A stretch of 64,000 bases of DNA, taken from positions 310,001-374,000 of the forward strand of contig NIVC01000217.1 of the NCBI GenBank assembly GCA_002269645.1, written 5' to 3'. The position numbers and the translations under genes are program-made. Below, piece after piece: positions 582-51,503 of the stretch; positions within the stretch are counted from its first letter, which is position 1, and every line of letters begins with the position of its first letter. Origin of the DNA: Macrostomum lignano (lineage: Eukaryota). The notes below the pieces were generated by a model. The model worked only from the letters and a program-made list of their open reading frames with translations. It was not told the DNA's origin and did no database searches.

Positions 582-1294
582 ATGCTGAAGAACATCGCCT
601 GCATTGTGGGTCTCGCCGTCCCGGTGCTTTGTGTTGCCGGTAGAGTAACTCAGATGTCCTACATTGGCTGCTATATAGACGGTGAGACTAGAGACATGAA
701 AGGACTCTCTGGAGTGAGCAGAATTGGACAGTTTAGCACGTCCGGCATCGCTGTGAGCAGTGCCAGTATGACGCACGAGCTCTGCAGCAGCGTCTGCTCT
801 TTGGGCGGCTTCCCGTACTTCGGTATTCAGCTCAGTGAGCAGTGCATGTGCAGCACCTCCTGCGGATCTCTGGGAGCTGCTAGCGAGACCGACTGCAACC
901 GCTTTTGCACTGGGAACGGAGCTTCTAAATGCGGAGGCCCGTGGCGCAATTCCGTATTTGCTTTGACCTATCCGAGTAAGTTTTTATTACAACGTTTTTA
1001 TTAGAGTTTTCACATGTAATTTCGGCACATTTTGTAAAAGTTTGTGTAATTCTTTTAGAGAAACAGTACTTTGAGCAGTCGCAGAGGCCCACCCAGACGG
1101 TGGAGTCCATCCACAGCACCTACTGGACCAGCGCTGCCCGAACCGACATCGAGTGCATGGGGCTGTGCGAGGCCTCAGCTGCCTGCCAGGCTGTGATTTT
1201 CTCTGGCCAGCAGCGCCTGTGCCACCTACTGAGGTTCGCCTACCCGCCTGCCAGTTTGGGCAGCACCGATGGAGACTTCTTTGCTCGTGGCTGA
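582..1294 (+). CDS. Secreted WSC + PAN/Apple domain protein, copy 1 (divergent, intact, 209 aa)
   Basis: Exon 1 582-975, donor GTAAG, phase-1 intron 976-1058 ending TTTTAG, exon 2 1059-1294, in frame to TGA. Hydrophobic N-terminus. WSC cysteine pattern YIGCY..C..VC..YFG.Q....C.C....C...C.GN...CGG. PAN core C..LC....CQA.......C. Confidence 0.9.
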
Positions 1295-2706
1295 CTGACT
1301 TTTGATTCTGGCAGCCCATGGATTGGATGTGAAAAAGAAACCAACTAATTGTTCAGTTTAGGGGAAAATAACTGTATCAAAATTGGCTTTGAAAAAAATA
1401 AGCTTCCGATTAAAAAATTGATGTAATATTTTATCAGCTTTACATAGACTGCCCTGTCCATTTTCAAAATATGTACCGTGCTTACTGCTACTAGAGACAT
1501 AATTCGAGTGTATTTCATATTTTATAACAAACTACTCTACAAGTAAGATTAAATAATAACTAGGGTTTCTTTGTTTCTAAGTTTCTTTGTTATATTCAAG
1601 TTATTTTCTCTGGTCACAATAAAGTGTACAAGCTACGATTCAACGAAGTTTTTGAACGCCTATTTAAGACTACTGTTATAAACTTCTGTTTCCGATTTGG
1701 TTTTTTTCTTTGTTCAAATTGGTGCGTGGCTGTCAGCAGACTGACGTGGCAGCGTGGCATGCACAGGGTTGAAACCGTTTTGCTTGCAAAATGCAAATGA
1801 AAATAATTGGAATGAAAGATTAGTGAGAGATGTGGCAGGGCTCCTCAGCGGCAGCTCATTAGTTCCAAGTTGGTTTGCTATTGTAAAGCAGATATTGTAA
1901 TATATTACGTCAGTTTGAGGCAGGTATCTGACTCTAACTGGTTTTAAACCCCCCCGCGCCGGCCCGGCCTCGCTTTGGTGGGTTGGTGGGGTGCTGGTGC
2001 TCTGCGTGCGTGCAGGGCTTGGGGCAGCCTCCCCCCCCGCTCTGTGCTATTTAGTCACGCGTCGCGGCCGCTGAGTCGGCGTAATTTTGGCAAAATATAT
2101 TTTTTCTCTTTTAAATTACAAAATCAATATATTTCGTCGCTTAAGGGGTTCGTTTTCCCTTTCTGGGCCGCGTCTGCCGGTCTTTTGTGCCACTTGCTTT
2201 TACTCTGCGTTAGTCTTTTTGGGGTTTAATATATTATACCATTTATATTATATTACTGTCCTAAAGACTTGCGCATTCAGGAAAATAAAATCCCTCCTCC
2301 AAAAAATTACGGTGCAAAGCAGACCAGACCCGTATTAGTAAAATCAAAAAGTTGAATGATCTCCAAATCATCTTTCAATTATTTTCCGCCACGCTGTCGA
2401 TGGAGAACAGACTCAGCTGGACTCAGCTAGGTAGTCTGGCAGTTCAGGCATCATAAATAATGAATAGGCTTCTAGGATGGGGGCTGCAGCTGAGCTCAGC
2501 ATCGCAGTTTAGCCTGTTCAGAAGTTTCAGTTGATGGATAGACCAGCAACAGAGTTCTTTTTTGCAAAGCTTTTTTCACGGGCTTATGCTTCTAGAAGTC
2601 CTAATCCAGGGACCTGACCAGTGAATGGCTCTGACGTTCTTTTTTGCGGAAAAATTACCGGCAGATTTAAAATCCAGTTCGCACTTTCGTGAGCATGCTG
2701 CTACCT

Positions 2707-2810
2707 CAGGTACTTCTGTGGGCATTGCTGTTCTCGCAGGTAATTCTGTGGGCATTGCTGTTCTCGCAGGTAATTCTGTGGGCATTGCTGTTTTTGCAGG
2801 TACTTCTGTG
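2707..2810. repeat. 30-bp tandem repeat, about 3.4 copies
   Basis: Unit CAGGTA(C/A)TTCTGTGGGCATTGCTGTTCTCG repeated with no spacers. Confidence 0.9.
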
Positions 2811-3270
2811 CTTCAGGGCTCCTGAGATACAGCAGCTTATTAATCCTTGGTATTATTATATTTTATGACATTATAATTTTCTGCTAAATCCCTAGACAGC
2901 CAGGCAAATAAAATACCTTTACGCTCGTAAATGACAGTCAAAAAAGCATGACAAGCGAGACCCAGACCAATAAAAGCAGAAAAAAAATTAATGATGACCA
3001 ATTCATTTTTCAGTTTATCCCTCTCGGACTGAATAGGTAGCCGGGTATTTCATGCAGAGGGAAGCGCCCTTACAACGGTACGCATTCGCGATGTTTTGAG
3101 TGGGGAGGCAGCCCCTGATAGGGTGCAGCCCAAAAGCGCTAAACTTGCTAGTAGCTGGTTGCTAAGGTAATCCGCTCTGCCCTAGCAGGGGTGGCGGAGT
3201 TTAGCCCATTCGTTAAGATGGATGCGGCTCTCCCCTTTCCCAAGCCTCTGTACCTCACAGTACATCGTAG

Positions 3271-3386
3271 TGCCTGGGGTGCTAAAATGAGTGCCTGGGG
3301 CGCAAAATGAGTGCCTGGGGCGCTAAAATGAGTGCATGCGGCGCTAAAATGAGTGCATGCGGCGCTAAAATGAGTGCCTGTGGCGC
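3271..3386. repeat. About 21-bp minisatellite, about 5.5 copies
   Basis: Unit GCGCTAAAATGAGTGC(C/A)TG(G/C)G. Confidence 0.9.
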
Positions 3387-3534
3387 TTTACAGAATGAGT
3401 GGTGACAAGAGTACATTGAGCTCATTAGTGCACTGGATTTTATTAAACCAGATCGTTTCTAAAAAGCCTATACAAAAACACAAAGATAAGTTTTCATCTT
3501 TTAGCAGAGCTGAATCCTATCTACCCAAGTAACT

Positions 3535-3735
3535 ATGCTCAAGACCATAGTCTGCATTGTGGGTCTCGCCGTTCCAGTGCTTTGTGCTGCCCGTAGAATA
3601 ACTCAGGTGTCCTACATTGGCTGCTATGTAGACGGTGAGGCTTGAAACATGAAAGTACTCACTGGAGTGAGCAGAATCGGACGGTTTAGCATCGACGGCC
3701 CCGATGTGGGAAGTACGAGTATGACGCTGACGCTT
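3535..3735 (+). pseudogene. WSC-PAN copy 2, truncated pseudogene
   Basis: MLKTIVCIVGLAVPVLCAARRITQVSYIGCYVDGEA* is a close paralog of copy 1. In-frame TGA at 3643-3645; homology ends near 3730, before most of the WSC domain. Confidence 0.8.
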
Positions 3736-4085
3736 GAGAAGCCACTGATACGTCTAGGGCATACGATCTGTGGTCTAAGGTAGACTTGAAGACAGTTTCA
3801 CAATATACATGTGACACTGTACTTGTACTTTGCTAAATTTAATTGTTTTAAATTTATAAAAAGTCACTCAAGATATCCCATGAATGCGATCTTCGCACTC
3901 AAAAGCCGATGCTTACTTTTTGATTGCCTGATGGAAAACTTTACATCTGTTTATGGAAATAACGATCGAAATTGAATCTTATATATTTAATGACTCAACG
4001 ACAACGACTGTGAACTACACAGTTTCTTCAACTTTTTCCAGTTGGAGCATCTTAGACTTTTAGCTTCATCAAGACTCAGTCAGCC

Positions 4086-4733
4086 TCACAGCTTCATCCA
4101 GACCCACTCAGCCTCGCTGGCCACCTCAGTGGGCACAGCGGTGAGCCTCAGCGGGTGGCATACGCGGTTCGAAGGCACGAAGGCGCAGCCCTGACAGTCC
4201 GCTATCTGGTAGCAGGCGGCAGCGCACTCGATCGCACTCATAGCAAAGACGCTGCGGTGGGTGATGAAGCTTGAGTAAGCCGTGATGGCAGGCATTGCAG
4301 CGACCTTCGTCTTCAACATCGAATGGTCAACTGCGGGTAATAGTTTTTTTCTTGGTTGCCGTTTAAAGTGTCATTTCACAGGGCATTCTGTCTGACATTC
4401 GCTGGCAGGCGCGGCACCCAGAGAGCCGTAGGCGGAGCCGCAGCTGCAGTAAATTCCGTTCTGAGCTCCGAAGTAGTGAAAGCGGCCATAGGCGCAGATC
4501 TTAGCGCACATCTGCAGCGTCATGGCGGCCTCTCTGACCACAGCTGGATAGCCAGATACCGTAGCGAACGGACCAACCGTGACAATCCCGACCAAACCGC
4601 GCAGGTCCCGGCTGTAGCCGCTGCTGTCAATAAAACAGCCGATGTGATTTATGGTCACCACATTTTGCTGTACTGCGACACCAACTCTGGTCCAAATCAG
4701 AAGGAAAATGAGTTGACCAGCTTTCGACAGCAT
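4086..4733 (-). pseudogene. WSC-PAN copy 3 (most divergent), probably disrupted
   Basis: ATG at 4733 (MLSKAGQLIFLLIW signal peptide), TATA-like motif near 4785-4791. The WSC stops at ECPVK* (4371) and lacks the GN..CGG..NSVF segment and the phase-1 donor. A phase-1 PAN exon 4330-4086 follows the acceptor CGCAG. Confidence 0.7.
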
Positions 4734-6344
4734 TTTATCTTTAAAAAGGAGGGAGCGCTTTGTGTTTAGTTGGATTGTCAATGACTTTTATATTCATCGT
4801 TGTGCCGGTAACCATGGAATTAATTTCTAGATGCATAGGTCCACTGGCCTATTTGTCCCACCATAGGGAGGCTGTTGGCTCAAGACTTTAGCACGATTTT
4901 GCTTCATGCCGTTCCTGTTGTGTAGGTCACGATTGCTTCATAATTTCCAGAAACCAGCTTCTAAACAAAGCTTGAAGCGGATTAAAACAGCAAGAGATTT
5001 TCTTCCGGTATTTTTTACTTTCAAAACAAGACCACCAGTTTTTTGCAGGTGTTTACAGGGCTTGTCCGCGTCAAACGTGAGTTTAAACGCTGCAAGATTT
5101 TATTTATTTATAGGGACTAAAACTGAAGCTGTTGTACACTGTTTTTGTGCAGTGGGTAGCACGTAAAATCTACTACTACTGCAAACCCATGCAGGTTAGA
5201 AGAAAATCCTAAGCAAATGTTGATGTCAAGCCTTGCCGATTCTATACAAAAATTCTGATCCCAGGGCACTTGCTGTATTGACTTGGTGCATTAAACCATT
5301 CACAAGACAATTACATCATAGCCCGGTCGGTAAACATACGCAAAATTGCATTGGAAGCTCGCCTCCCACCGGCTTGTCTTCTCTACCAGCCAATCGTACC
5401 AGACAGTACTCATACTCTCAAAGAGCGAGGCTAAATACTAAGATATATTGCTTGAAAATCTTCAAAGAATTCTGGCGCTCTGCTAAGAGATAATGTCTTG
5501 GAGTAAACTTCATTTAACCATTCTGGCAAATGAATTTTCAGCGCAAATTCAATTCTGCTACTCATTAGTAATATAAGGGCTCTGGAAATTTAAGAAAAGA
5601 GAAGCCGAAAATTTGAGAATCAGAGGCGCGATTAACAAGAATATAACAAGAATATTTTTATGCATCATTTGAATGTATGTGCTTTTTATAATGTATCCTG
5701 CGTCCCTTGAAACTATATATTAATTATTTCAGTCAGTGTTTATTCAGTAGTGTGTTTTCTTTTCCGCGATACTTACTGTACGTACTTTATTGCTATTGTT
5801 TTACTGTATGTTAATTCCTATTGTATTTGAAACGCGAATGCGCTGTGTTTGGTGTTCGGGTTCCTAGGCGCCGTGGTAGTTGTAGAGTAGCGTAGTCATT
5901 CCAGAATTCGAGTCCATCCAGTGTAAATAAAATATCTAATTACTTTTACTGCAAAAATAGATTAAACAAATATATATGAAATAAATAAGGGCGCATTTCA
6001 CCCACCAAGCAAGGACGCATTCATTCATTCATCTGTCATCACAACAAATATTGTTTGAATTGTTCGACTTCAAAGAAGTTTATTTTACAGAGTTACAATT
6101 CAAATTTTATTCTTCCAATGAGTTTTAGCTACTTTATCTGCTATGGTCGAATTTTTGATACGATATATATATTTACCTTTTTTAACACTGTTTGAAAAAC
6201 TTCCCACTAGTTTGTACTGACTTACGTGTATAAAATACACTAATAATCCAAATAAGGCAAATCCTGCAAACTGATAATTCAGACACTTATTGGTCCTTGA
6301 AGACAGCCATCAGAAATTATGGCGGGATATTTTCAAAGCAATTC

Positions 6345-6510
6345 CCGGCCCCATAAGCCTGAAAATCTCATCAATTACTCCCATGAGCCACAGCATTTTA
6401 ATAATTACCCAATGAACCTCGACAATTCATGAATTCCCCATGACATCTTAGCAATTCAACCCATAAGCCTTAACCACTCAGCAGCCCTAAGAAACCCAAA
6501 AATTTTATGG
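6345..6510. repeat. Degenerate ~28-30-bp repeat related to the 58690-59760 family
   Basis: Recurrent CCCATAAGCCTT..A.ATCT.AGCAATT-like units. Confidence 0.45.
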
Positions 6511-7982
6511 GGGACTGACATGGCACTTTTTAGGCTTGCCATGGCGCAGTTTTAAGAAGTAAAAATACAGAAAGCCACTGTTAATGCCGAATTCTGGGCA
6601 ATTCTGGGCAATTCCCAATTATTCTTGCGCAGAATTGTCTTTGCAAGTAGCTGCAGAAATAAAACAGTTTTAACAGAGCCTATCTGCTACAGTCATCGCT
6701 ACGAGATCGAAAAGAATGAGCCAAGAAAAGTTGTCGGCGAGAGGAAGTGGCAACAGGAGGAAATGCTGCTTTCCTGGTTCAGCCACGGCCAACAAGCGAA
6801 GATATGTACGAGTATTTTTAGCTGGGGCAAACAATGTCCGCTCCTTGTCGCACAGATCTGAAAGGAGGGAAGCCTATAGAATCGGCATCAGCTTCGCAGC
6901 TTCCTGAGAAAAAAACCTTCTCTCTCGCGGCTTAATTGTCAGAGAGACAAAGATTCGGAGCGAAGACACAAAACAATTTCCGTTGATTGTCTTGTAAGAA
7001 GCAAGAAGATGGAGCAATAATTTTTAGCTCGCAGCAGTCAGAGTGGCTGAGCTCAGGCTGAACTGCTTTGCTCAGCCCAGTGTTCAAAGTGAGTCAAAAT
7101 TCACAGTAGCTAAAACCTGAAATGAAAAATAGAAACAGGACCAAGCAATCAAGCAGTCTTATTTAAACAAAATATGTAGTTCTTAGCCTACATAACTACT
7201 TATACTATGGTAAATAAAAAGCGCGTTCTTTAAGAACTTCACAAGGGCGCTAGAATAATTCAGAGTGACGATGACGATCCTCGAATGAGCAGGCTGTCGC
7301 GATTGGAGCTGCAGTGTGAGATACTTTTTATGGGCCAATCGCTCATGAGCTCGATGATGCTCAGGTGAGAGCAGCGAAGATGAGCGAGAGGAAGGTAGAG
7401 TTTTTAGTAACCAGGAGCATGTTGAGCTGTCTGCAACTGCATAAAAGACAAAATATTAATGAAAATTCCAAGTGCGCTATTTGGATTTCGAATACCAAAA
7501 CTTTTAGAAAATTTTGAGAATCTGAACTATAGAACGGAATTTACTGATAAGTCAATTGTATTCCTGACCTGAAAACGATCGATACAATAAAATTGTTTAA
7601 TTTTTGCATCGATTTGCATATAAAACAAGCAAATTTAGCTTTTTTTGGAAGAAACGCAATGGATAGCTCATATCAAAAAGAAATTATGGTCAAGAGTTGC
7701 TCTCAAAATTTGGGATATTCTTTCTGTTTATTCATAGATGAGCGTACAGAGCATCATTTTATATCATACATAATTAGAGCTTGCTTTCAACATGCGTTTA
7801 CGAGCGTAGGCTCACACCATTCAGATATTGCTTTCAGATGAGTTTAGTCCCAATTATTCTTATCACACCCGTTATTTAAAGACTAATTGATTCCAAGGGA
7901 ATGACAAATTAATTAATTTTCCCTCCTAAAATAAAAATGTCAATCAGTCGTGTACATTTTGATGCCTTTTCAGTCTCATTCA

Positions 7983-9000
7983 ACGCTCCTTCTACCGCCC
8001 TTGAGTATTCTTGTACTGTCCCATATTATCCTACTAAGCGATGCAGTGCTTATCTTCCATTTTTATCGGCGATTGGCGGCCCGAAACTACCCGTTGCTCG
8101 ATTACGACGTTAAGTCGGTAGGACCGATCGCTTGAACGGCGCCTCGCTGAGGAAGGCTGCACCAGTGCGTCCAGTCGCGTGCTAAGTTTGTGGGTTTGCT
8201 AAGTTTGTGTCCTGGTGCATCAGATTCCGGCATTTTTGAGCACTCGCAAACAGCCGAATGCCAGCAAGGACTCCTCATGACTCAATACCGCCGCACTCTG
8301 TATTCCCTACCGCACCACTGAGCCCAAAGATTCAAGAATTCAAAATGGGGCTTTCAATGAAAATAAAGAGCCAATCAAAATAAAATTAAAAACAGAGGGC
8401 AGAAGCACGGCTGGGACATTTCAGCATTCAAGCTTCTCAGTCGGATGACGGACAAGGTGGTCCATGGTTTGAAGGCTCGAAAACTTCGACTTCAACACAA
8501 CCGCTCCAATCTATCCCGAACATTCTTTTGAAGCCATACAGTCGATATATAGCTCTAGTCGTCTCTTAGCTCTGTTAAAATACACTGATAATAATAAGAT
8601 AAAATAAGATATTAGGATAATAATAATGATAAATGATAATAATAAGTGAAACACTGAAAGACCTAGCTGATAAATATCGGCAGGTCTGTATCTAAACATC
8701 ACCATAACTTATTTATCATCCTAGAGCGACGGACACTCCTTGCATTGCACCGGACCGTCATCTTTGCTCACACCAAAGAAAAGCTAGTTGAATGAATTTA
8801 CTACAGCTACTCCAAGGCAGATGAAGAAATCTGTAGAGCATTGCATGATTTATAATGATGAGCAGCAATAAGGAGTCGAACTTTTGTTGCTCGATATCAA
8901 TTTCTACAACCGAATTCTGGTTCGAGCTTCACATCTGCTTTTTTTCTAAATCCTGATCTCCAGAGAGCATCAGTCTCCGTGCTCTGAAAATGTTGCATAT
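7983..9000. repeat. Partial copy of unidentified decayed element X (3' flank of copy 4)
   Basis: Shares CTACTAAGCGATGCA, GCACCAGTGCGTCCAGT, TCCATGGTTTGAAGGCTC and GCATTGCATGATTT with 36620-37450 and 46770-47530. Confidence 0.8.
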
Positions 9001-9492
9001 AATGGGCTCACCTTGAAAAAAATCACTTCTTTATTATGCACTGTACGTCACTCTAACTCTAAAGATTTATAGTTCAGTTCTTTTTCATCCTACATATGTT
9101 ATGAGCAACAGGCTAAGAGGAAATTTATTATTATTCACAGCAGATCTTTGAATATTTTTAGGGTTTTTCTTTGTTTAATCATTCTTCAATCATCAGTTCA
9201 AAATTGCAAAGAAGCAAAGCAATTAAAATATTTTTTCAGAGTTGCAATTTGGCTTTGTCAAAGCCAAGCCAGGCTTTCATGATAGTTTTGCAAATTCACC
9301 GTAAGGACTTACGTCTTCATGCTTTATTTCGAATAAAAGATGTTATAATAGCAACTTTAGGCTAGTAACAAGCCGCACTGTATTTTACGCACTCATTTTC
9401 AGAGGATATTAAGGTGTGAGTCAGTGTTTATTCATGGTTTTAAAATCGTCCTTGATTATCAAGAGTCGTCCAAAAAGTCATCGCGTTGTTTC

Positions 9493-10208
9493 TCAGCCAC
9501 GCTGGTAGAGAGTCCAGTCGGGTCCGGTCAGGCTGGCTGGCGGGTAGGCGAACGCCAGCAGGTGGCAGGCGAGCAGCCGCTTGGAGAAAACGGCGGCCTG
9601 GCAGTCGGCTCTGGCGCTGCACTTGGCCAGGCAGTGCATGACGGATGGGGTAGCGGCCGGCCAGAACGAGGTCTTGCTGGTCTCCACAGTGAGGGTGGAA
9701 TTCTTCAACATCTTGTAGAAATTGTTTTCTGAAATGGATTTGTTTAGAAATTTCTTTGTATTAATATTTGTGGTAAATATTTTCAATATATTTTAACATT
9801 ACTCGGGTAGGCCAAAGAGAAAATGGAGCTGGTGCCGAAACCTCCGCAAGTCTGCAGCGAGTTTCCAGCGCACTGCATGTCGCACTTGCTATCGTCAAGT
9901 TTTCCATGTAATCCATAGCTTGTGCCGCAGAAGCACTGCTCGCTGAACTGCACTCCGAAGTAGGGGAAGCCGCCCAGAGAACAGACGTCGCTGCAGAATT
10001 CGAGCGACATGTCACCGTTATTTATTATGCCGATATTAGCATCAATGGTGTACAGCCCAAGCCTGCTCACTCCTTTCAGCGCGGTCAAGTCTCTGTTAGA
10101 GTTGTCACCGTCTTGGTAGCATCCGACGTACGAGATTTGAGCAACCCTGCCTGCACCACAGGTCAGTAGAGCGCACAGCAACAGTGACTGAAACATGCAT
10201 ATGCTCAT
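9493..10208 (-). CDS. Secreted WSC + PAN/Apple domain protein, copy 4 (intact, 213 aa)
   Basis: Exon 1 10208-9803 (406 nt), 74-nt GT-AG intron 9802-9729, exon 2 9728-9493 (236 nt), in frame to TGA. Eight WSC cysteines and four PAN cysteines. Confidence 0.92.
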
Positions 10209-10275
10209 TGAGAAGAGCAACTGGCTTTAATTTTTAAGCAAAGTAGTTTAATGCATCTCAAGGCGTGTGTTACTC

Positions 10276-10334
10276 TTTTATAGTTTAGTGAGTACTGGCA
10301 GCAGTAATTAGCTGCTTAATTTTATCCAATCAGC
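10276..10334 (-). promoter_or_regulatory. TATA box plus CCAAT-containing module of copy 4
   Basis: TATAAAA on the minus strand at 10276-10282 and TTTTATCCAATCAGC at 10320-10334. Conserved at 33884-33938 and 41453-41512. Confidence 0.55.
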
Positions 10335-10992
10335 TTTAAGATCGCAGTTTTTTACAACAGATAGAAACTAGACGAAGGTATTTGCCATGTTAAGTACTGA
10401 TTATGACCTAGTTTGGTATTTGTGGCTATTTTAACAGCCAGAAAGCAGATTAACGTAAACTATAAACATCTGATCTCAGATCTGACTGCTGTTGTTGCGG
10501 TTTTTGTGGTAAAATGAGACTGAGAACTACTTTTAGATAAAACAGGCGGCATTGTAGTGTAAACTCACTATGACTTTTATTTTTTGTCCCAGAGGTCTCC
10601 ATAGTTTTGATAACTTGAGAATTTTAAGCTCTGGGGTCAATGGTGACGTTATCAAGCAGCAGCTCTCGTATTTGTGCCGTTTCGGCCCTAGGAAGCATAG
10701 ACATATTTCTATTGTGTCATACTTCGCGGGCCGCATCATTTCATTTCGGCCCGCTTCTAGATGCAGGGCTAAGCTAAATATGCAGTTTTCGATATACCAT
10801 TTTTACCATAGACTATAATCCCGGGCCGAATCGTTGTTTCTGCCCGCAGCGTGGCTGAGTGCAAAAACTGGGGTGGGGGGCTTCGCCCCTACATTTAAAC
10901 CATAGATAAAATCAACCAGAGTCTGACTACATTTAAGTAGTGGATATCAGAATTCTTTTCATTCTGAATTTAACTTCGTTTTTTGTCAACCT

Positions 10993-20306: not shown

Positions 20307-20341
<35 letters not shown>

Positions 20342-23061: not shown

Positions 23062-23106
<45 letters not shown>

Positions 23107-34627: not shown

Positions 34628-34957
<330 letters not shown>

Positions 34958-40664: not shown

Positions 40665-41386
40665 TCAGCCACGCTGGTAGAGAGTCCAGTCGGGTCCGGT
40701 CAGGCTGGCTGGCGGGTAGGCGAACGCCAGCAGGTGGCAGGCGAGCAGCCGCTTGGAGAAAACGGCGGCCTGGCAGTCGGCTCTGGCGCTGCACTTGGCC
40801 AGGCAGTCCATGACGGATTGAGCAGCGGCCGGCCAGAACGAGGTCTTGCTGGTTATCACAGTGAGGGTGGAATTCTTCAACATCTTGTAGATGTTTTTGT
40901 CTAAAAATAGATATTTTTCTTTGTATTAACATTTTTGGTCGATATTTACGTGGCTATTTTTGCTGTTTATTTCAACTTACTCGGGTAGGCCAAAGCGAAA
41001 ACGGAGTTGATGGCGAAGCCTCCGCAAGTCTGCAGCGAGTTTCCAGTACACTGCTTGTTGCACTTGCTCTTGCTCAGTTTACCATGCGATCCATAGGTCG
41101 TTCCACAGAAGCAGAACCTACTGTTTTGCACTCCAAAGTAGGGGAAGCCGCCCAGAGAACAGAGGTCGCTGCAGAACTCGAGCGACATGTCATCGGTATG
41201 TATTATGCCGATATTAGCATCAATTTTGTAAGAACCCAGGCTGCTCACTCCTTTCAGCGCGGTCAAGTCTCTGTTGAAGTTGTTACCGTCTTGGTAGCAT
41301 CCGATGTACGAGATTTGAGCAACCCTTCCTGCAGCACAGGTCAGTAGAGCGCACAGCAACATTGACTGAAACATGCATATGCCCAT
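40665..41386 (-). CDS. Secreted WSC + PAN/Apple domain protein, copy 6 (intact, 213 aa)
   Basis: Exon 1 41386-40981 (406 nt), 80-nt intron GTAAG...TTTTTAG, exon 2 40900-40665 (236 nt). Confidence 0.92.
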
Positions 41387-42712: not shown

Positions 42713-42855
42713 CTTTTTTAACTTTTCAACAGTTAAAAAAACCACTGACTGTAAAAACGTCTGGCGGACGTTTTGCTTTGGACGCTAATAGACAGTAAAA
42801 TTTTATTGCGATTTGTGCTTCAAATTGCTTTTAATTTTTTTCGATACTTTGGGAC

Positions 42856-45345
42856 TGTTAAATAAATAATCAAGTCTAATAAATCTGAGGGTTAGACTCT
42901 AACAAAAAACAGGTAAATTAGCCCTGTGGCTAAGTTATTGCTTATGTAATAAATTAAATCGATATTCTCTCTCTCCAACTCTCTGACTCATCAACGCCTC
43001 ATCCACATCAACCCCACCCCAACACACTCTGAGACGGGGACCGCCAAGTGTATGTTGTAACCCGGGTCGGTTTGGGTGCCCAGTCCCGAGTACAATATAT
43101 ATTATATGTGATATAACAGGCGTTGTGACGCTCTGTCTGTACTTTTATGAATACGACGAGCAAGCGTGACGACGCTCTGCGATAATAGTTCGATCCCTCT
43201 GGTGTTGTGACACTCAGAGTTCACGCTGCGGCTCGAGGTGTGGTGACACTTTCGAGTGCTTCTAGTCTCTATACCGTAGGGTGTACGCAATATATAGGGT
43301 AAACGGTACAGTACTACAAAAGCTATATGATCTCCCGGCGTTATGACGCTCTGGCAAGAACTCGGCCTAGCAAGCTTCCCGAAAAGAAAGGACTCAAACA
43401 GCAGGCGGCTTACCAGTGGCCAAATGACTGTTCACCGTTGATTGCTCGTAGGTCTCAAGCGCAGGTTCGCAGGTTCGCACGTTTGTTGATTGGCTCGTAG
43501 GTGTCAAACGCGGCTTCTAACTTTTTCTCAATTCTCCAAGATTCTTTTTAAAGACTAACTTCTCAATTGAGCCCTCGGGTTTGTTTTATCGTAGGTAGCT
43601 AATGTCGCTGTTTCTTACTTAAGCAAAGTCTCGCGCTTGCAACCACGGAGCACACAAAACACAAAATAGCACAAACAGGACTAACAGAGAAACAGAGAAA
43701 CCGAGAAACAGAGCGAAGGGCGTGAGAAAGGCCTAGAGCCGCATTAAATAATACCCAAACCCTGGGGCCGATGGCCCCACCGGCTAAGCTCACCAAAACA
43801 AACCACGCCGGCCCAGCCAATCAAAACCCCGCCTAAGGGGGGAGGGGCTGCACCCGCGCCAAAGCTGGCCCGGCCGCAGCCAACCAGCCCTGAGCACGGG
43901 GCAGGGGCACGGCTGGGGAGGGGCACGCGCAAAGCCCGGCCGGCGGCCAGACCCTGCCATGCCCGCCAACCCCCCCAACCAGCCCCAAAGTGCAACGCGC
44001 CCTGCCAACTGACAAGGGCGCATGCACTACATGTACACTGGCGACGCTACACATAGCAGAGGATCGGTACGCAGGCACTCCAAATCCAACACACTCCCCC
44101 TAATGATGCTTCATCATTACTTAAAGGTTGATACGAGTATTCGAAGAGCGAAAATATTACGCAAACGAACGGCAGCAAATCGTCAACAGTTTGAATGCGA
44201 ATTCAGCAACGAAGAAGCACGTAAGTGAGGAACAAAGGGAAAACGAAACTTAAAAAAAATCCAATCAGCGCTAAGGAGCTCAAAAGGTAAGCTTGAAAGT
44301 GAGTGAAAATTACTGCGAACTAAGCTAAACAGGAACTCGAAATAACGATTAGAACAGTCATTGAAAGTCAGTTACCTAAGTTTATTCGGTCACAGCTTCC
44401 AACAAAATCAGGTTCTCCACCGGTCGGCGAATCAAGCATCTCCTGGGACCGCGGCCAGGTCTGGGCGCGACTCGAACCGTTGCAGATCTCACCGCCCCGT
44501 CTCGGCCAGGATGCACCGACTCGATGACACCGGTACACCAGGTGAGCCTCGGCTGCCCGGCTTCACCTTTCACCAGGATGATGTCGCCGGCCGTCGCTTT
44601 TCGAGTTACGCCATGCTTGGGACTTAGATTATGTTCTCGCAGGCTGGTCAGATACTGTCGCTCCCAGCAGTCCCAGAAGGCTTGCAGTCTGGCGCGCATT
44701 CGCCTCAGCAGTGTTGGCAAAGGCAGCAGGAGCTCGGGCGCACCGCTAGAAGTTGGCTCCGCCGTCAGCCGTTGCAGGACCAGAAAGTGCGCCGGCGTCA
44801 GGACTTCTCCGTTGGTCTCGGCATCCATGTAGAGTAGAGGCCGACTGTTAAGCACCGCTTCCACCTCCATTAGCACTGTCTGCAGTTCGTCCAGCGTCAG
44901 GGTTGCGTTGAGGATGGTCTTGCGCAAAGCCAGCTTGATGTCCCTCATCAGTCGCTCCCAGAAGCCTCCTTGCCATGGTGCGCGTTTGACGATGAATTGC
45001 CAGGTGATTTTCCTGGTGGCGCAGAAGTATTGAACTTGTCAACTCTCCGACGCCTGAAGTATTCTGGCAGTCTTGGTGAATGTCTTGGCGTTATCAGAAA
45101 TAATCAACTCTAATAAATCTGAGGGTTAGACTCAAACAAAAAAAACAGGTAAATGAGCCCTGTGGCTAAATTATTGCTTATATATTAAATTAAATCGATC
45201 TCTCTCTCCAACTCTCTGACTCATCAACGCCTCATGCACGCTTCAACCCCACTCCAACACACTCTGAGACGGGGACCGCCAAGTGTACACTGGCGACGCT
45301 ACACATAGCAGAGGATCGGTACGCAGGCACTCCAAATCCAACACA
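42856..45345 (-). mobile_element. Internally deleted BEL/Pao LTR retrotransposon
   Basis: TGTG...AACA termini with 5-bp TSD GGGAC (42851-42855 and 45346-45350); LTRs about 255 bp; PPT GGGGGAG at 44100-44094. Integrase motifs SDNAKTF, APWQGGFWERL, LNSRPL and LTPAHFL, plus a DUF5641-type tail ending at 44382. Confidence 0.88.
43053..44031. mobile_element. Solo LTR (979 bp) nested in the BEL 3' LTR
   Basis: TGTTG...CTACA termini with 4-bp TSD TGTA (43049-43052 and 44032-44035). The uninterrupted site is seen in the other LTR at about 45283. Confidence 0.85.
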
Positions 45346-45479
45346 GGGACAATTTATCAGACAGGCCAGAAGTGGGGTCGAGCATGCTGCTAAGTGTTGG
45401 GGTGAGTGTCCATTAGGGTCCATCATGAGGGTGAGTTTCTGGATGTGAGTGAGTGTCCATTGGTTGAGTGTACCCGGTT

Positions 45480-45615
45480 TCAAGACCCGATGTGATACAA
45501 GATCCGAATCCGTATCACCACCGAGCATTCGCAGCATTGCATCGGGCTTCTGTTCCACCAGAGGCTTCAGGTGCCGATACCACAGCTCATATATGATGAG
45601 CTTGCCTAGCACATC
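45480..45615 (-). mobile_element. Family-B DNA polymerase fragment, Polinton/Maverick-like
   Basis: LGKLIIYELWYRHLKP...LRMLGGDTDS resembles the SKL.MY.FWY..LKP...LLY.DTDS region of protein-primed PolB. Confidence 0.5.
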
Positions 45616-46539
45616 TGGCCTTTCTTAGTGCCTCAAATTACGTGCTACCCTGCGCCCTGGCCAAGGTGGCGCTGTACGCTGATTGGCTGCGGCCTCGCGC
45701 TACTGGTCTATACTCGTAAAAGTAGCGATCTACAGCAGGCACTAGTATTCTCTCGTCGATTGTCTAAAGATGGTCGCAACAATTTGCGTGAGAGGAGCCG
45801 ATCTGGCGATCCGGGTCCTGGTGAGCCAAAAGCATGGAGGAGGTTCTCGCAGAGACGGAGAAGATTGTGAAGCTGTGTGCGGACTTCTTGCGATTGACCA
45901 GTCTGCCCCAGATTCGCATCAAGACTATTACCGCTGTGACGGCCTTTCCCGCGGGTCGACATCCACTCCGGTTGGGGGAAGTCAAGTCTAAGTGGCCGCA
46001 TCGGGGCACCCACGAGCCGGAAATGTTTAACGGACTTGTGCTCGAGTTTACTGCCTCTGTAAAATGATTTTGTTTCATTCATATCGCTGTATAATAGCTG
46101 GCGCTCGCAGCATGGTTGAGGCTCAGACTGCAGCTGATGCCCTCTCCGAATTTTGCATGCAGACCAAGCATCCGAGCCTACTTTGCTGAACTCTGACTGC
46201 ACTCCTTAACGGCATAACAGTAGTAGTGAGGCATTTATCATTAAATAATACTATAAAATTCTTTTTCTGCAATATGTTTTTTGAGTTTTAAAAAAAGTAC
46301 AAGACACTGTTCATCGCCTGGTGATATTGCAATGACTGTTTTGCTTATTTATTTCTAGTGGGTAGCATTAGCATTACCATTCTTGCCTCTCTCTTGAGTC
46401 CTGCACTCCACACCTCCCTTCATAATTTGGGCTTTATTACATAAGTTAATGTCATATAAATATACTGGTTTGGGCCCTGCGCCCACTTCTGCTCCTTCTC
46501 TTAGTAGTCAATTTAACTCCAATTAAATATTCTCTAGTT

Positions 46540-46758
46540 TCATCTTATTCTTTTCTCGACATCGAGTTTCCTGTCGGCGAACTCCTCCAAGCGCTCTTTC
46601 AAGCTAGCCGGGTGTCGGAATTGATGAATAGTGAGCTCCATGCCGGGCAGACCTGGCCGATGATCCTCGCTAGACTTGAACCACTTTCTAATACTAATGG
46701 TCCGTGTGTCTGGCACCAGGCTGATGCGATAATCATATAATCGTTCCTTAAATTCCAT
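46540..46758 (-). CDS. Small ORF with a PC4-like ssDNA-binding motif (72 aa), probably mobile-element derived
   Basis: ISIRKWFK...RPGLPGMELTIHQF resembles the PC4 pattern IDIR.Y.....PG.KGISLT..Q(W/F). Confidence 0.4.
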   Translation of the reverse strand: MEFKERLYDYRISLVPDTRTISIRKWFKSSEDHRPGLPGMELTIHQFRHPASLKERLEEFADRKLDVEKRIR

Positions 46759-47539
46759 CAAAAATTTATTTATTTATTAAAAAATGCCCTACTAAGCGAT
46801 GCATATGTACAGCATTCATTTTTATTGGCGATCGGCTACCCGAAACCACCGGTTGAATCGGCAGCTGAGGACGGTTGCACCAGCGCGTCCAGTGGCGTGT
46901 CAAGTCTGTGTGGGTGCGACTTAGGGCATCAGATTTCGGGAACTCGGGAGCATCGCGTCTAGGCACAGGCCAGCAAGTACTGTACCCTTTACGAGCGTAT
47001 ACCCTACTATACCGCACCGCTAAGGCCAGGGGTAGATTCAAGGATACAACACTCACTTTTCTGAAGATTAAAACCGCACCGAGGCTCACGAATGGACAGA
47101 AAAAGCCGGATTGCGATGAAAACTAGGAGCCAATCGAAATGAGATCAAAAACAGAGGGCAGGGGCACAACTGGGCTACCTGGTATTTGTGCTAACAAGCT
47201 GCCCAGTTGGATGAAGGACAAACCGTCCATGGTTTGAAGGCTCTAAAGCTTCAACATAACAGCTTCAATTTACCTCTTAACATTCCTAAAATACAGTGGA
47301 TATGTAGCAGAATAAAGGCAGATGAAGAAATAAGTAAATCATTGCATGATTTAGAATGAACAGCAGCAATAAGAGGTCGTGCTCGAATTCTCGATATCAT
47401 TTTCTACACTCTAATTTTGAGTTAAGCTTCAAACATTCTTTTTATCCTGAATCCTGATCCCCAGAGCAGTCTCCGGGCTTTGGGATGGGCTCACCTAGAC
47501 AATAACCCCTAGGTTTAACATGCATCCATATATGCACCG

Positions 47540-50445
47540 TATGTTGCGATTTCAGGGCCGGTTTTACCTGCCAGCCGTACACCCAGGTGGAACAAGCCAA
47601 GGACTACGCCCGGTACAAAATACAAGTGGCCGAGCTTTTTGACCGATTTCCGGTGCACCGGGTGGTCCGATTTCACCGCGACTACCACCAGCACCGCGAC
47701 GCCAACAGTCTTTTCTGGGGCAAAGACTGCTCCCAGATGTCTATTAGGCACCTGCTCAGCACCAAGACTAACCAGCAGAACCAGACAGTCAGGCGCCCCC
47801 AGCCTAACAAGAACCGCGTCGTTGGGCCGTGAACATCTTCGGGTCATAAGCTATGTCTGTCTTTCAACAGCACCAACGGATGCTCAGAGACGAACTGCCG
47901 CTTTCTGCATGCCTGCTGAGTCTGCGAGGGCAACCACTCCGAGAAGAATCACCCAAAAAACTGAGAAAGCGCGCCGATTGTGTGCACATGACCTATTTCA
48001 CGCCTTCTGATTTTAACAACCCGACGCAGCCTTCTCGGCGGCAGGCCTCTTCAGGCCGCTTACCCAAATCTCAGATCTGACCAGGCCGCTTACCCAAATC
48101 TCAGATCTGACGCGGTCGTCTGTTGATCTACGAATAGATGCCTGGCGCCTGGAGCTCGCCGGCGACCACGACGCTGATTTTATTCTTCACGGCATCGAAC
48201 ATGGCTTTCCTATCGCTGATGACCTTAATTTTGCGCCCTGTTTTCTCCGCAACTACCAATCCGCCTACCAGAAGCGCGACCAAGTCCAAGCAGCCCTAGA
48301 AGAAGAAATCCGTCTGGGCAGATACATCCCGGTGGCGGACAAGCTTACGATAGTCTGCACGCTCGGCGCGATTCCTAAGGACAGCGCCAGCATCCGGCTG
48401 ATCCACGACTGCTCCGTTCCTCACGGCCAAAGCCTGAACGACCACTAAGCCCAGCAGCGCAAGATCCGCTTCACTTCTGTCGATGAGGCCGTCGGGTTGA
48501 TGCAGCCGGGCTGGTTCATGGCGAAGGTTGACATTGCGTCCGCCTACCGTGCTGTGCCTATTTTTCCGCAGCGCTACCAAGCCACCGGGATCCACTGGGA
48601 CTTCGGTAACGGGCGCTCAGCTTGCATAGTGGACACGCGCCTGTCATTCGGCAGTCGTGCCTGTCATCATCTTCCATCGTCTCACTCAAGCGGTCCAGCG
48701 TATGGTGTGCTGCAAACCCTTCCTAGCCACCATCGTCTTCATCGATGACTTTCTTGTCAAGGCAAGGACAGAAGCTAAATGCAACCGAGCCTAATGCGAG
48801 CTGGGTAACCTGCTCACTGAGCTTGGATTCGTCATCAACGAGCGAAAATCCGTGCCGCCAACAACCAAGCTGCGGTTCCTGGGGATAGACATCGATACCG
48901 TGCAAGCGATCCTCTTTTTCCCAGCTGACAAAGCCAGGAAGCTTCAGTTCCTGCTTCGCACCTGCCTGTCGCAGCAAGATATGTCGAAGTATGAGTTGCA
49001 AAAACTGCTAGGGCATCTCAGCCATATTTGCACTACCGCTCAGCACGGTCGAACCTACCTGCGCCCGCTCATCGATTTCGCCAATAGCCTGACGCATCCG
49101 TCCGACCGTGCTCACATCACGGTGGAGCTCAGGTCTCAGCTGGAGTGGTGGACGAATCCTTTGAGCATTCTGCCGCCAAAGTCCGCTTGGCCGTCTCGTC
49201 GACCAGCCGCAGCTATCGAGTCCGATGCCTCCGACGCAGGCGGCGGTGCGGTGCTGCACTTCGAAGGAGTGCTGAGGTTGATGTGGTCGCTATCCTGAAG
49301 CATCAAGAGGCCCACCGTTGCGGTGTACAGAGACAGCACCGCTGCCTGCTGCATCATCAACTCTAGCTCGGCCAAGCACCGCGGCATCACCGACCTGCAG
49401 AGGCTCGTCACTCTGATCTACATCCAACGTGACATTATCGTGCCTGGCCGCTTTCAGCTCCTCGCGGACCCACTGTCCAGAGCTAACGACGCTAGCCAGC
49501 TTGCTAACTTTCTTTTTCGCTTCTACGGCACCTGCTACGTGCCTACCCGCTTGCTTGCATCTGCTTGCTTGAGTCCTGCCGCTGCTTCTCACCTTCTTTT
49601 TTAGGTCCACCTCCTGTGGTCTCAGTGCCTGTCCTCAGTTCGGTCGCCCGCCAACTGCTCGGCCGTGGCTTCGCAAGCTCAACCAGCGCCGCCCACGCCA
49701 CACAGTTCGCATCCTGGTTTCAGTTCTGCGATGCCCATGGAGTTCGACCACTGTCAGCGCAGCCTGCCGATGTGCGCAACTACCTGGCGGAGCTGGCCGG
49801 AAACCCACTGTTCTCCATCAGCAGCCTGTCCTGTCACCTCGCAGCCGTGTCCTGGTTCTACAAGGCGAACGGTGTGGCCGACCCTTCCAAGCAACCGCTG
49901 GTACAGCTCGCGCTGCGTGGAGCCCGACGGCTCCTTGGTGCTGCCCCAAGAGCAAGAAAGCGTTGCTGCCAGCCAACCTCCAGCGACTGTGCCGAGCACT
50001 GCGACCAGAGGAACCCAGTGTCTGCGCGTTCTGGTGCGCCTTCATTGTTGGACGGTGGGCCATGCTGCGACGGGCCAATCTGTGTGTCGCCGGTCGGTTT
50101 GACCCCCTTCGAGACCTCAGCGCGAGCTGCATCAGGCCGGCTAGTGCCGGCGCTATTCTCGTCATTCCGAGGTCGAAGACCAACCAGTTTGGTGCACGCC
50201 AGCACCGTGTCTTTTGGCCGCGGCTCCCAGCCCCCAGCGTTGGCATGCTTGGCAAATTTCTTTTCTTGTGTGCTTACCTTTACCCTCTTCAGTTCCCTTC
50301 TGCTTTTATCCCTCTGCTTTTACCCCATTGCTTGTAATACTTCAATTTCGCGTCAAATACACTCGCTCTCACTGGGCTCGTTTCGCCCGCCTTCTCGCCG
50401 TCACCTCTGTGTCTTCTTGTTCCTTTCGGTCCGGTTGGCTAACTA
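47540..50445 (+). mobile_element. Decayed DIRS-order (Ngaro-like) tyrosine-recombinase retrotransposon
   Basis: Gag-like ORF at 47587; RT motifs IPK..RLIHDCS.P.G.SLND, MAKVDIASAYRAVP, LSFG and IDDFL; RNase H ESDAS; recombinase N-terminal helical domain plus LRRAN and RSKTNQ, truncated near 50235. Interrupts the array-unit flank with no TSD. Confidence 0.85.
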
Positions 50446-50783
50446 GCTCTATTTGAGTTTATTAATTCAGTTCTATTTCAGTTCAATCGACTTTCGAGTG
50501 GTCCTTGGATATTTCTTTATTGAATAATTTTTAAAACACCTGTTAAAGATTTTTGATATACATTTGGCAGTTTTAAAAGTTCTTTGTCGATAGTCTGCAA
50601 ATTGTTTTGGACCTCTTAGTGTATTTCAAAAATAAATTTTACAGTAACAGCTAATTGATGTTAACACGCCGCTCAGTTTTTAGCGCATTTTCAAGTAATA
50701 TCATGGTCGTGTTTCAGTTTTTTCACGGTAATAAAATAGTCCTTGGTTATTAAGAGTCGTCCAAAAAGTCAACGCGTTCTCCC

Positions 50784-51503
50784 TCAGCCACGGTGGTAGA
50801 GAGTCCAGTCGGGTCCGGTCAGGCTGGCTGGCGGGTAGGCGAACGCCAGCAGGTGGCAGGCGAGCAGCCGCTTGGAGAAGACGGCGGCCTGGCAGTCGGC
50901 TCTGGCGCTGCACTTGGCCAGGCAGAACATGACGGATTGGGCAGCGGCCGGCCAGAACGAGGTCTTGCGGGTCACCACAGTGAGGGCGGAATGCTTCAAC
51001 ATCTTGTAGATGTTTTTGTCTGAAAGTTTTTTTTTGGAATTTCTGCGTATTAATCTTTGTGGTCAATATTTTCGTGGGTAGTTTATTTTGTCCATTTTGT
51101 TTTACTCCTAACTTACTCGGGTAGGTCAAAGCAAAAACTGAGTTGGTGTTCCAGCCTCCGCAAAGTTGCAGAGAGTTTCCAGTGCACTTATATCGGCACT
51201 TGCTCTCGCTAAGTTTTCCATGCGATCCATAGCTCGTGCCGCAGAAGCACTGCTTTCTGTTCTGCACTCCGAAATAGGGGAAGCCACCCAGAGAGCAGAC
51301 GTCGCTGCAGAACTCGAGCGACATGTCATTGTTATTTATTATGCCGATATTAGGATTAATGCTGTAAGGCCCGAGATTTTTCAATCCTTTCAGCGCGGTC
51401 AAGTCTCTGTCAGAGTTGCCACCGTCTTGGTAGCATCCGACGTACGAGATTTGAACAACCCTGCCTGCAGCACAGGCCAGTAGAGCGCACAGCAACAGTG
51501 ACT
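50784..51503 (-). pseudogene. WSC-PAN copy 7, 5'-truncated
   Basis: Splice sites are intact (97-nt intron 51116-51020; exon 2 51019-50784). Homology stops at about 51503, removing the ATG (MSICMF) and promoter. An in-frame TAA lies immediately upstream. Confidence 0.8.

Follow-up and report, generated by a model that had tools for sequence, protein, structure and literature searches.

A birth-and-death cluster of WSC-PAN genes in Macrostomum lignano and its possible association with male reproduction

Gene copies at the locus

The window analyzed in the present study, i.e., the whole stretch of 64,000 nucleotides to which all positions below refer, belongs to the Macrostomum lignano assembly Mlig_3_7 (NIVC01000217.1, ~310–374 kb). 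Exactly seven loci encoding a WSC domain, with or without a PAN domain, were detected in this window by both tblastn and a six-frame scan with a family HMM (E-values of 1e-8 to 1e-58), and neither search revealed an eighth. These results agree with the initial annotation, which listed seven paralogs, three of which were intact (copies 1, 4, and 6) and four of which were broken (copies 2, 3, 5, and 7). The features of the locus are as follows:

582–1294, plus strand: copy 1, intact; exon 1 at 582-975, intron at 976-1058, exon 2 at 1059-1294 (PAN and stop codon); 209 aa
3535–3727, plus strand: copy 2, copy-1-type pseudogene fragment; the WSC exon is reduced to its 5' third and has an in-frame stop at 3643-3645
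4086–4733, minus strand: copy 3, pseudogene of the third subfamily; PAN ORF at 4319-4086
9493–10208, minus strand: copy 4, intact; exon 1 at 10208-9803, intron at 9802-9729, exon 2 at 9728-9493; 213 aa
9494–9640, minus strand: putative conversion tract in the 3' half of the copy 4 PAN exon; homologous to ~40668-40810 in copy 6 and 50787-50930 in copy 7
10569–10736, minus strand: 5' exon belonging to copy 4 and lying upstream of it; the donor after 10569 is GTGAGT; from GenBank RNA-seq-derived models
33066–33817, minus strand: copy 5, transcribed pseudogene (Mlig015848.g1); WSC domain intact
40665–41386, minus strand: copy 6, intact; exon 1 at 41386-40981, intron at 40980-40901, exon 2 at 40900-40665; 213 aa
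50784–51503, minus strand: copy 7, damaged; WSC at 51503-51117, intron at 51116-51020, PAN at 51019-50784, all in frame

Three subfamilies are represented, one by copies 1 and 2, one by copy 3, and one by copies 4-7. The locus had been described as a tandem array; the clustering was confirmed, but a strict tandem order was not, because the copies are separated by gaps of 0.4-23 kb, lie in mixed orientations, and are interrupted by retroelements and another gene. The possibility that the seven copies are assembly duplicates of one or two loci was ruled out because they are only 70-86% identical to each other over a unit of ~1 kb, and they are regarded as true paralogs. An ORF with PAN and C-type-lectin-like domains is located within the cluster at 16757-17599, and nine other spacer ORFs gave no match in Pfam.

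A homeologous array is present on NIVC01000622.1. This separate block is 96–97% identical to that in the window, and assembly duplication does apply to it as an account. Copies 2 and 3 carry the same lesions on this contig, including the stop codon of copy 2.

In the three intact genes, exon 1 encodes a signal peptide and the WSC domain, exon 2 encodes the PAN domain, and a phase-1 intron of 74–83 nt lies between them (83, 74, and 80 nt in copies 1, 4, and 6, respectively), giving products of 209–213 aa (209, 213, and 213 aa). As read directly from the sequence, the donors are GTAAGT or GTAATG and the acceptors are YAG, and the proposed two-exon architecture with a phase-1 intron was thereby substantiated. 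As an architecture shared by all paralogs, it holds in general, the exception being copy 2, which has no PAN exon. The product of copy 4 is 100% identical to UniProt A0A1I8FU86, a prediction that is the basis of the intact 213-aa model; no record of this exact product was found in the assemblies searched. Copy 1 carries Cys94 at a position occupied by Tyr in its homeolog (Mlig012529.g1, 96-97% identical) and in the family consensus.

The GenBank gene models in this region are derived from RNA-seq genome-guided assembly, and they show that spliced transcripts arise from copy 5 and part of copy 4 at a minimum. The model at copy 4 (Mlig005356.g1, 89 aa) joins the upstream exon to the PAN exon and skips the WSC exon. 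In the model of its homeolog (Mlig012784.g1), the upstream exon enters an internal acceptor (TTTCAG/, the slash marking the splice position) within the signal-peptide codons, such that the start is replaced by an upstream exon without an N-terminal signal peptide. Thus, neither of these two annotated models is a simple mRNA encoding a signal peptide, WSC, and PAN.

Regarding the damaged copies, the WSC domain of copy 3 lacks the last Cys block and is terminated by a stop after ECPVK, with no phase-compatible donor; its intact relatives are the proteins P0036 and P0039. In copy 5, the normal donor GT has been changed to TT at 33411-33410, the annotated model uses an alternative donor 24 nt downstream, and the PAN domain is frameshifted by a 1-nt deletion near 33196. 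In copy 7, the start ATG and ~9 initial codons are missing, and with them the beginning of the signal peptide; homology to the other copies begins exactly at the internal acceptor position (AAAAG/TCACTG). A deletion at a GTCA microhomology would be a simpler origin for copy 7 than a semi-processed retrocopy because the intron has been retained. Spliced-leader trans-splicing might rescue the copy.

Domain architecture and structural relatives

The assignment of WSC and PAN domains is supported by Pfam, an AlphaFold model, and Foldseek, which are in agreement. Against a Pfam gathering threshold of 27.8 bits, the WSC domain (PF01822) scored 41.6, 63.3, 56.1, and 37.3 bits in copies 1, 4, 6, and 3, respectively, and was above the threshold in all four copies scanned. 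The PAN_1/Apple domain (PF00024, threshold of 21.4 bits) exceeded its threshold in copy 4 (23.8 bits) and copy 6 (25.6 bits), fell just under it in copy 1 (20.5 bits), and scored 16.3 bits in copy 3. A comparison of 14 diverged paralogs with 45-84% identity to copy 4 showed that the WSC cysteines C30, C72, C76, C92, C94, C109, C113, and C121 are invariant or near-invariant, that the PAN cysteines C168, C172, C178, and C190 are invariant, and that the C-terminal motif CHLLxFAYPPASL is near-invariant.

The only hydrophobic segment is N-terminal, and a hydropathy analysis showed no transmembrane segment after residue 25. No catalytic domain or any Pfam domain other than WSC and PAN was detected in the 209-213-aa products; the initial annotation had likewise noted the lack of a transmembrane segment and a catalytic domain. 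The products are probably secreted, with the signal peptide being called from hydropathy alone.

The AlphaFold model had a pLDDT of 83.9 and pTM of 0.74. In a sequence search of the PDB, the best match was the WSC domain of Kremen (E 4e-11), and matches of the PAN domain to SML-2, HGF, and MIC4 were marginal (E 0.02-0.5). For the WSC part, Foldseek retrieved Kremen, a glyoxal oxidase, and Wsc1, the last with a TM of 0.78 by target; for the PAN part, it retrieved HGF-N, plasminogen, the FXI apple domain, and SML-2 with a probability of 0.97-1.0, and PAN matches over 72-88 aligned columns had a probability of 1.0.

Vertebrate Kremen1/2 (5FWS), yeast Wsc1 (7PZ2), and fungal glyoxal oxidase (9N3U) share the WSC fold and its eight-cysteine pattern with the flatworm proteins, but differ from them in the remainder of the polypeptide. 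Kremen combines a kringle, WSC, CUB, and transmembrane segment, whereas the flatworm proteins consist only of WSC and PAN with no second hydrophobic segment. In Wsc1, the WSC domain is followed by a Ser/Thr-rich stalk, transmembrane segment, and cytoplasmic tail, a position directly occupied by PAN in the flatworm proteins, while glyoxal oxidase carries a catalytic domain that they lack. WSCD1 and WSCD2, of about 570 aa, carry a sulfotransferase-like domain after their WSC domains, and this domain is also missing from the shorter flatworm products. The PAN fold and its core disulfides are common to the N domains of HGF and plasminogen, the apple domains of factor XI and prekallikrein, and SML-2 (2YIL) and TgMIC4 (4A5V), the latter two of which are apicomplexan galactose-binding lectins; however, these proteins pair the PAN domain with kringles, proteases, or additional apple domains, not with WSC. 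The combination of WSC and PAN in one polypeptide does occur in the metagenome proteins P0146 and P0215, although these proteins are 676-809 aa in length, with two or three WSC repeats and a PAN_4-type domain, and are not compact two-domain proteins. By analogy at the level of the folds, a lectin-like role for the WSC-PAN proteins is plausible.

Evolution and taxonomic range of the family

The dN/dS values among copies ranged between 0.58 and 1.03. dS was 0.2-0.3 in WSC versus 0-0.03 in the C-terminal half of PAN, and copies 4, 6, and 7 were 98–100% identical in nucleotide sequence over the 3' half of PAN. Since this identity extends to silent sites, the sequences indicate that the 3' half of PAN has been homogenized between copies by gene conversion, resulting in a mosaic mode of evolution. 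The identical runs between copies included those of 140 nt (P<5e-5) and 86 nt (P ~8e-4). At the protein level, the copies have diverged strongly in the center and C-terminal part of WSC and toward the N-terminus of PAN, and an identity profile showed much stronger conservation in the exons than in the intron and flanking sequence. Pairs including the pseudogene copy 5 had dN/dS values of 0.47-0.63; because these were no higher than those of intact pairs, the high dN/dS values may reflect relaxed constraint rather than diversifying selection. The expanding and decaying history previously suggested for this cluster was reproduced in the form of local duplication, pseudogenization, and retroelement invasion, i.e., birth and death.

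A stronger form of this history is that the cluster is mostly decaying and dispensable, with the intact ORFs representing young duplicates that have not yet been disabled and the transcripts being aberrant or noise. We consider this to be very unlikely. The breakage of four of the seven copies, the aberrant isoforms annotated at copies 4 and 5, dN/dS values that are near 1 for copies 4 and 7 and alike for pseudogene and intact pairs, and the odd Tyr-to-Cys change in copy 1 are consistent with such decay; however, the retention of the 12 structural cysteines and C-terminal motif across the 14 diverged paralogs argues against it, as do the excess of exon conservation over that of the intron and flanks, the dN/dS values of 0.36-0.49 for copies 1 and 4 against their own homeologs, the persistence of 38 clusters in the genome, and the presence of orthogroup members in other Macrostomum species. 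Intact, broken, and converted copies together represent a compact natural experiment on the diversification of reproductive or recognition proteins, in which copies 1, 4, and 6 are concrete targets for functional studies. Even if the family is ordinary or redundant, the cluster is a well-resolved case in which birth and death is combined with gene conversion in a genome that is rich in repeats and was recently duplicated.

The 38 clusters above are the M. lignano protein clusters that matched the family. Matches outside Macrostomum covered the WSC part only, and all five source-checked single-unit full-length hits (~177-212 aa) in an exhaustive search were from M. lignano. From these searches, the family appears to be confined to the genus Macrostomum. 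The gene models are already present in GenBank and UniProt as uncharacterized or "WSC domain-containing protein". The earlier remark that this is not a named family was fair, although these models and a published orthogroup table already include it; literature searches for WSC and PAN proteins in flatworms and for a cell atlas yielded no usable match.

Expression labels and candidate roles

The copy 1 homeolog Mlig012529.g1 and the copy-1-type genes Mlig003596.g1 and Mlig011376.g1 belong to OG0000005, a Macrostomum-specific orthogroup of M. lignano, M. hystrix, and M. spirale that is labelled Testis and germline_FACS (Brand et al., 2020, Table S1). This label applies at the orthogroup level and to the copy-1 type only, and one testis-specific member suffices for it. 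OG0000005 has no tail or ovary member and carries no Tail, OvI, or social-plasticity label, and the IDs of the copy-4-7 type are not among the Table S1 rows listed (Brand et al., 2020). The supplements of Grudniewska 2018, Wudarski 2017, and Arbore 2015 were queried with gene IDs and gave no useful entry.

Immunity or mucus is a less likely setting for these proteins than male reproduction (with a testis, sperm, or other ejaculate association) because the copy-1-type orthogroup is labelled as testis region or germline and because a lineage-specific, fast-evolving pattern with expansion and decay is typical of Macrostomum reproductive proteins. On balance, we lean toward the overall explanation that the cluster encodes a Macrostomum-restricted, disulfide-rich WSC-PAN family with diversified recognition and a male-reproductive role. 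Cleavage of the signal peptide would yield a mature protein of ~190 aa composed of two rigidly packed modules of the PAN superfamily with six disulfides (eight and four cysteines). The variable surface of WSC may provide diversified ligand recognition, most likely of glycans, and the near-invariant C-terminal face of PAN that contains the conserved motif may contact a common partner or mediate self-association.

Sexual selection and sexual conflict among hermaphrodites are studied using M. lignano as a model. A more elaborate proposal, to which we attach a low probability, is that the proteins form a modular system for the recognition of sperm and partner, or of self and non-self gametes, with a diversifying WSC head, constant PAN handle, and start supplied by a spliced leader. 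The head would diversify under sexual conflict in this simultaneous hermaphrodite, while conversion would keep the handle identical so that all variants dock to the same partner or sperm-surface anchor, and the terminal AUG of the spliced leader at the conserved in-frame acceptor TTTCAG/TCA would control the production of the signal peptide.

Fungal WSC domains bind cell-wall polysaccharides. The proteins of the cluster may accordingly be viewed as lectin effectors with an immune or mucosal function that are secreted by epidermal, gut, or gland cells and carry diversified WSC domains directed at microbial glycans. The predicted secreted, lectin-like architecture and the PAN and C-type-lectin-like ORF within the cluster are compatible with this function, and a birth-and-death pattern also suits immune families. 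Nevertheless, the sole published label for relatives is testis region or germline, and a full-text search found no Macrostomum paper that ties WSC to immunity or mucus; an immune or mucosal function is thus unlikely in our estimation. The role in immunity, mucus, or adhesion that was initially proposed gained no support: the only expression-related evidence consists of the testis/germline label and prostate WSC proteins, both for relatives.

WSC-domain proteins are prominent among the prostate secretions of M. lignano and include Mlig-pro46, described as WSCD2-like, and Mlig-pro5/RNA815_80.4, which has two WSC domains (Weber 2018, PMC5977470; Arbore 2015, PMC4490696; Weber 2019, PMC6953679). 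They recur among the seminal-fluid candidates of this species. Similar to the family examined herein, the Mlig-pro set comprises small WSC proteins of the same species, usually with a signal peptide, and multi-copy, poorly conserved gene sets linked to reproduction. These similarities in size and secretion signal raise the possibility that the proteins of the cluster are prostate-derived seminal fluid proteins of the Mlig-pro kind that are transferred at mating to manipulate the partner. We regard this as improbable based on three comparisons. The 26 primers of 13 prostate transcripts selected from the prostate-limited set Mlig-pro1-76 (11 WSC-annotated transcripts plus Mlig-pro46 and Mlig-pro63) comprised RNAi primers for Mlig-pro46 and Mlig-pro63 and 22 further in situ primers for WSC-type prostate transcripts, and every hit in the window and loci L001-L003 had at least 4 mismatches; therefore, the window genes are not any of these 13 transcripts. 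Furthermore, the complete table that maps the ISH primers lists neither the gene IDs at copies 4 and 5 nor the queried family gene IDs. Mlig-pro transcripts are also tail/prostate-specific and socially plastic, in contrast to the testis/germline label of the copy-1-type orthogroup. In addition to being different genes based on primers and IDs, Mlig-pro proteins differ in that a PAN domain has not been reported for them, and the WSC-PAN proteins represent a second, architecturally distinct WSC family in M. lignano.

Gene content and structure of the locus

The structural finding is real, and the initial annotation described it well. A tblastn search using one WSC exon and one PAN exon as queries identified exactly seven loci in the window, as did a scan of all six frames with a family HMM built from 22 members, in agreement with the seven paralogs claimed. 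Direct reading of the DNA also bore out the division into three intact and four broken copies.

582-975 / 1059-1294, plus strand: copy 1, intact, 209 aa
Copy 2: 5' fragment with an in-frame stop
Copy 3: stop inside WSC, last cysteine block absent, no phase-compatible donor
10208-9803 / 9728-9493, minus strand: copy 4, intact, 213 aa
33098-33817: copy 5, donor GT changed to TT, 1-nt deletion in PAN
41386-40981 / 40900-40665, minus strand: copy 6, intact, 213 aa
Copy 7: ATG and first ~9 codons gone

The phase-1 intron described between the WSC and PAN exons was present in copies 1, 4, and 6: it is 74-83 nt long, its donor (GTAAGT or GTAATG) follows the first base of a codon, and its YAG acceptor is pyrimidine-rich. 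The description was accurate apart from three points: the copies lie in both orientations, the distances between them are uneven (0.4-23 kb), and a PAN exon is missing from copy 2. The suggested Pfam comparison gave 37-63 bits for WSC in all copies scanned (cut-off 27.8) and placed copies 4 and 6 above the PAN_1 cut-off of 21.4 (23.8 and 25.6 bits), but copy 1 slightly under it (20.5). The only hydrophobic stretch was in the N-terminal ~20 residues. Residue 94 of copy 1 (window 861-863, plus strand) is Cys, being Tyr in its 96-97% identical homeolog and in the whole family (S-Y-G motif), and yields an unpaired ninth cysteine in the WSC domain.

Over its 213 aa, the spliced product of copy 4 showed 100% identity to UniProt A0A1I8FU86 (Macrostomum lignano), copy 5 corresponded to GenBank gene Mlig015848.g1 (database protein P0003, NIVC01000217.1:343098-343817), and GenBank Mlig005356.g1 corresponded to window 9493-10602; these matches place the window at NIVC01000217.1, ~310,001-374,000, in Mlig_3_7 (GCA_002269645.1).

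Paralog divergence and probable gene conversion

Copies 4-7 share a common unit of ~1.0-1.1 kb with a DNA identity of 80-86%, copies 1 and 2 are 77% identical, and copy 1 matches copies 4-7 at ~70% in the exons only, and copy 3 falls into a third subfamily, of which intact members lie elsewhere (database proteins P0036 and P0039). With within-window identities of ~70-86%, the possibility that the copies are assembly duplicates, named in the initial annotation as grounds for refutation, was ruled out for the seven. Window 1-11311 has a collinear counterpart on contig NIVC01000622.1 (96-97% identity), and this block is of the redundancy type that the genome paper ascribes to the duplicated large chromosome of line DV1, with 180 Mb in blocks that are at least 95% identical. 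The copy 2 stop and copy 3 truncation were both present in the homeologous block, which indicates that both copies were dead before the block duplication.

Whole-CDS dN/dS (Nei-Gojobori) was 0.58 for copies 4-6, 1.03 for 4-7, and 0.60 for 6-7. Since pairs with the pseudogene copy 5 gave similar values (0.47-0.63), high ratios alone are no proof of positive selection. dS was highly uneven, at 0.21-0.31 in WSC versus 0-0.03 in the last 41 PAN codons. The sliding identity of the genomic unit was 93-98% over the signal peptide and WSC start, 71-86% over central and C-terminal WSC, and 98-100% across the 3' half of the PAN exon up to the stop codon, with the intron and flanks scarcely alignable. 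Copies 4 and 6 share an identical run of up to 140 nt, and the pairs with copy 7 one of up to 86 nt; shuffles of variable sites reached these lengths in fewer than 1/20,000 and in ~8/10,000 cases, respectively. Because silent sites were also identical, gene conversion is the best explanation for the PAN 3' tract, to which selection may possibly add; the C-terminal PAN segment was nearly invariant in paralogs on other contigs with just 45-60% overall identity, and is therefore under strong constraint at the protein level as well. Birth and death, together with local gene conversion, has shaped the family.

Transcripts and protein structure

The Mlig_3_7 GenBank annotation is a genome-guided RNA-seq assembly according to the genome paper, and its models therefore report real transcripts. 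The model for the copy 1 homeolog reproduces the two-exon structure exactly. The copy 5 transcript starts MSICMFQ and uses an alternative GTAAT donor 24 nt past the dead one, still entering the frameshifted PAN. The copy 4 transcript joins an upstream exon (10569-10736, minus strand; ATG 10602, GTGAGT donor after 10569) to the PAN exon, omitting WSC with the phase kept, and its 89-aa product is PAN-only and lacks a signal peptide; copy 6 retains a degenerate form of this exon with the donor lost. In the homeolog of copy 4, the upstream exon is spliced to an internal acceptor, ATGTTTCAG/TCACTG, within the signal-peptide codons.

10196-10188, minus strand: internal acceptor TTTCAG/TCA of copy 4 (site at 10190), with homologous sites in copies 5 and 6

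This acceptor conforms to [T/C]TNCAG, the published motif for spliced-leader (SL) trans-splicing, and the SL of M. lignano terminates in ATG (as published); one idea is that SL addition at this site would give an in-frame start and the signal peptide MSLLLCALLTC... The homology of copy 7 starts exactly at the internal acceptor point (51503), with a poor acceptor, AAAAG/TCA.

AlphaFold2 modeling of copy 4 from a 22-sequence family alignment gave a mean pLDDT of 83.9 and pTM of 0.74, with low confidence in the signal peptide only. In Foldseek searches, the N-terminal domain matched Kremen-1, the sensor domain of yeast Wsc1 (TM 0.78 when normalised by target), and the WSC module of a Fusarium glyoxal oxidase. 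Matches for the C-terminal domain were the N domain of HGF, plasminogen, apple domains of factor XI / prekallikrein, and SML-2 and MIC4, two galactose-binding apicomplexan lectins; PDB sequence matches were concordant for both domains. Eight WSC and four PAN cysteines were invariant across 14 paralogs, and the C-terminal motif CHLLxFAYPPASL was mostly so. Three of the 15 cysteines are in the signal peptide, leaving 12 in the mature protein, enough for six disulfides.

Distribution, possible role, and neighbouring elements

A profile search of 5.8 billion proteins returned 38 M. lignano clusters, some of which are fragments, fused models, or homeologs; beyond the genus Macrostomum, it gave WSC-limited matches only (23-69% query coverage), from fungi, Mytilus, a crinoid, and metagenomes. 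Exhaustive HMMER against 1.84 billion representatives returned mostly multi-WSC repeat proteins, and all five single-unit full-length matches (~177-212 aa) whose source was looked up were from M. lignano. WSC repeats and a PAN_4 domain occur together in two long metagenomic proteins, and the domain pairing is thus not unique in nature; the compact two-domain family is. The family is uncharacterised and genus-restricted. Its gene models and orthogroup were already public, and it belongs to a known kind of system, that of secreted lectin-like multigene families and reproductive protein families.

Mlig012529.g1, the copy 1 homeolog, and two more copy-1-type genes belong to orthogroup OG0000005, whose 92 transcripts come from M. 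lignano, M. hystrix, and M. spirale, while M. pusillum contributes none (Brand et al., 2020). This orthogroup is labelled Non-Specific, Other, and Testes, summarised as Testis, and also germline_FACS, with no tail, ovary, or social labels; by the rule of Brand et al. (2020), Testis denotes that one or more members are specific to the testis region and that none conflicts. This label is the sole expression-related evidence and applies to the copy-1 type alone. Many prostate-limited seminal-fluid candidates of M. lignano have WSC-domain BLAST matches, among them the WSCD2-like Mlig-pro46, a catalogued prostate transcript, and RNA815_80.4, with two WSC domains. Identity of the window genes with known WSC-type prostate transcripts was ruled out for 13 by primer sequences, and the complete primer-mapping table contained neither the gene IDs of copies 4 and 5 nor the queried family gene IDs. 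Indirect evidence favours a male-reproductive role over immunity or mucus. The best-supported model is of a putative lectin-like kind, in which the WSC face would vary and the PAN face would stay constant.

Other elements of the window are as follows.

16757-17599, plus strand: single-exon ORF between copies 4 and 5, probable start 16841, signal-peptide-like N-terminus
19774-20696 and 22447-23649: two long blocks of degenerate simple repeats, GA/AGAGAGG-type, with extreme skew in both GC and AT
29058-32173, plus strand: non-LTR retrotransposon with endonuclease (Exo_endo_phos) and reverse-transcriptase (RVT_1) ORFs
35540-36631 and 39095-40210: direct repeat of ~1.1 kb, 73% identity, between copies 5 and 6
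44382-50446: retroelement remnants between copies 6 and 7
44382-44948, minus strand: DUF5641 integrase-tail ORF
49565-50446, plus strand: ORF with phage-integrase N-terminal SAM-like matches, ending ~340 bp from the copy 7 stop codon

The single-exon ORF showed a weak PAN/apple match (Pfam PAN_1 16.5 bits; Eimeria MIC5 E 0.001); its C-terminus is C-type-lectin-like (codakine, CD209, and mosGCTL-1 at E 0.02-0.3) and carries an EPS motif. It looks like a second lectin-like gene type inside the cluster. The ORF at 49565-50446 suggests a DIRS-like tyrosine-recombinase element. The non-LTR retrotransposon has a GC content of 65% versus ~43% around it, with related fragments at 109-378 and 52657-53059. 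The ~1.1-kb repeat has no relation to the WSC-PAN unit and probably represents a further dispersed repeat. A local segmental duplication is suggested by an identical short sequence (20763-20783 and 23705-23725) that flanks the two GA/AGAGAGG blocks.
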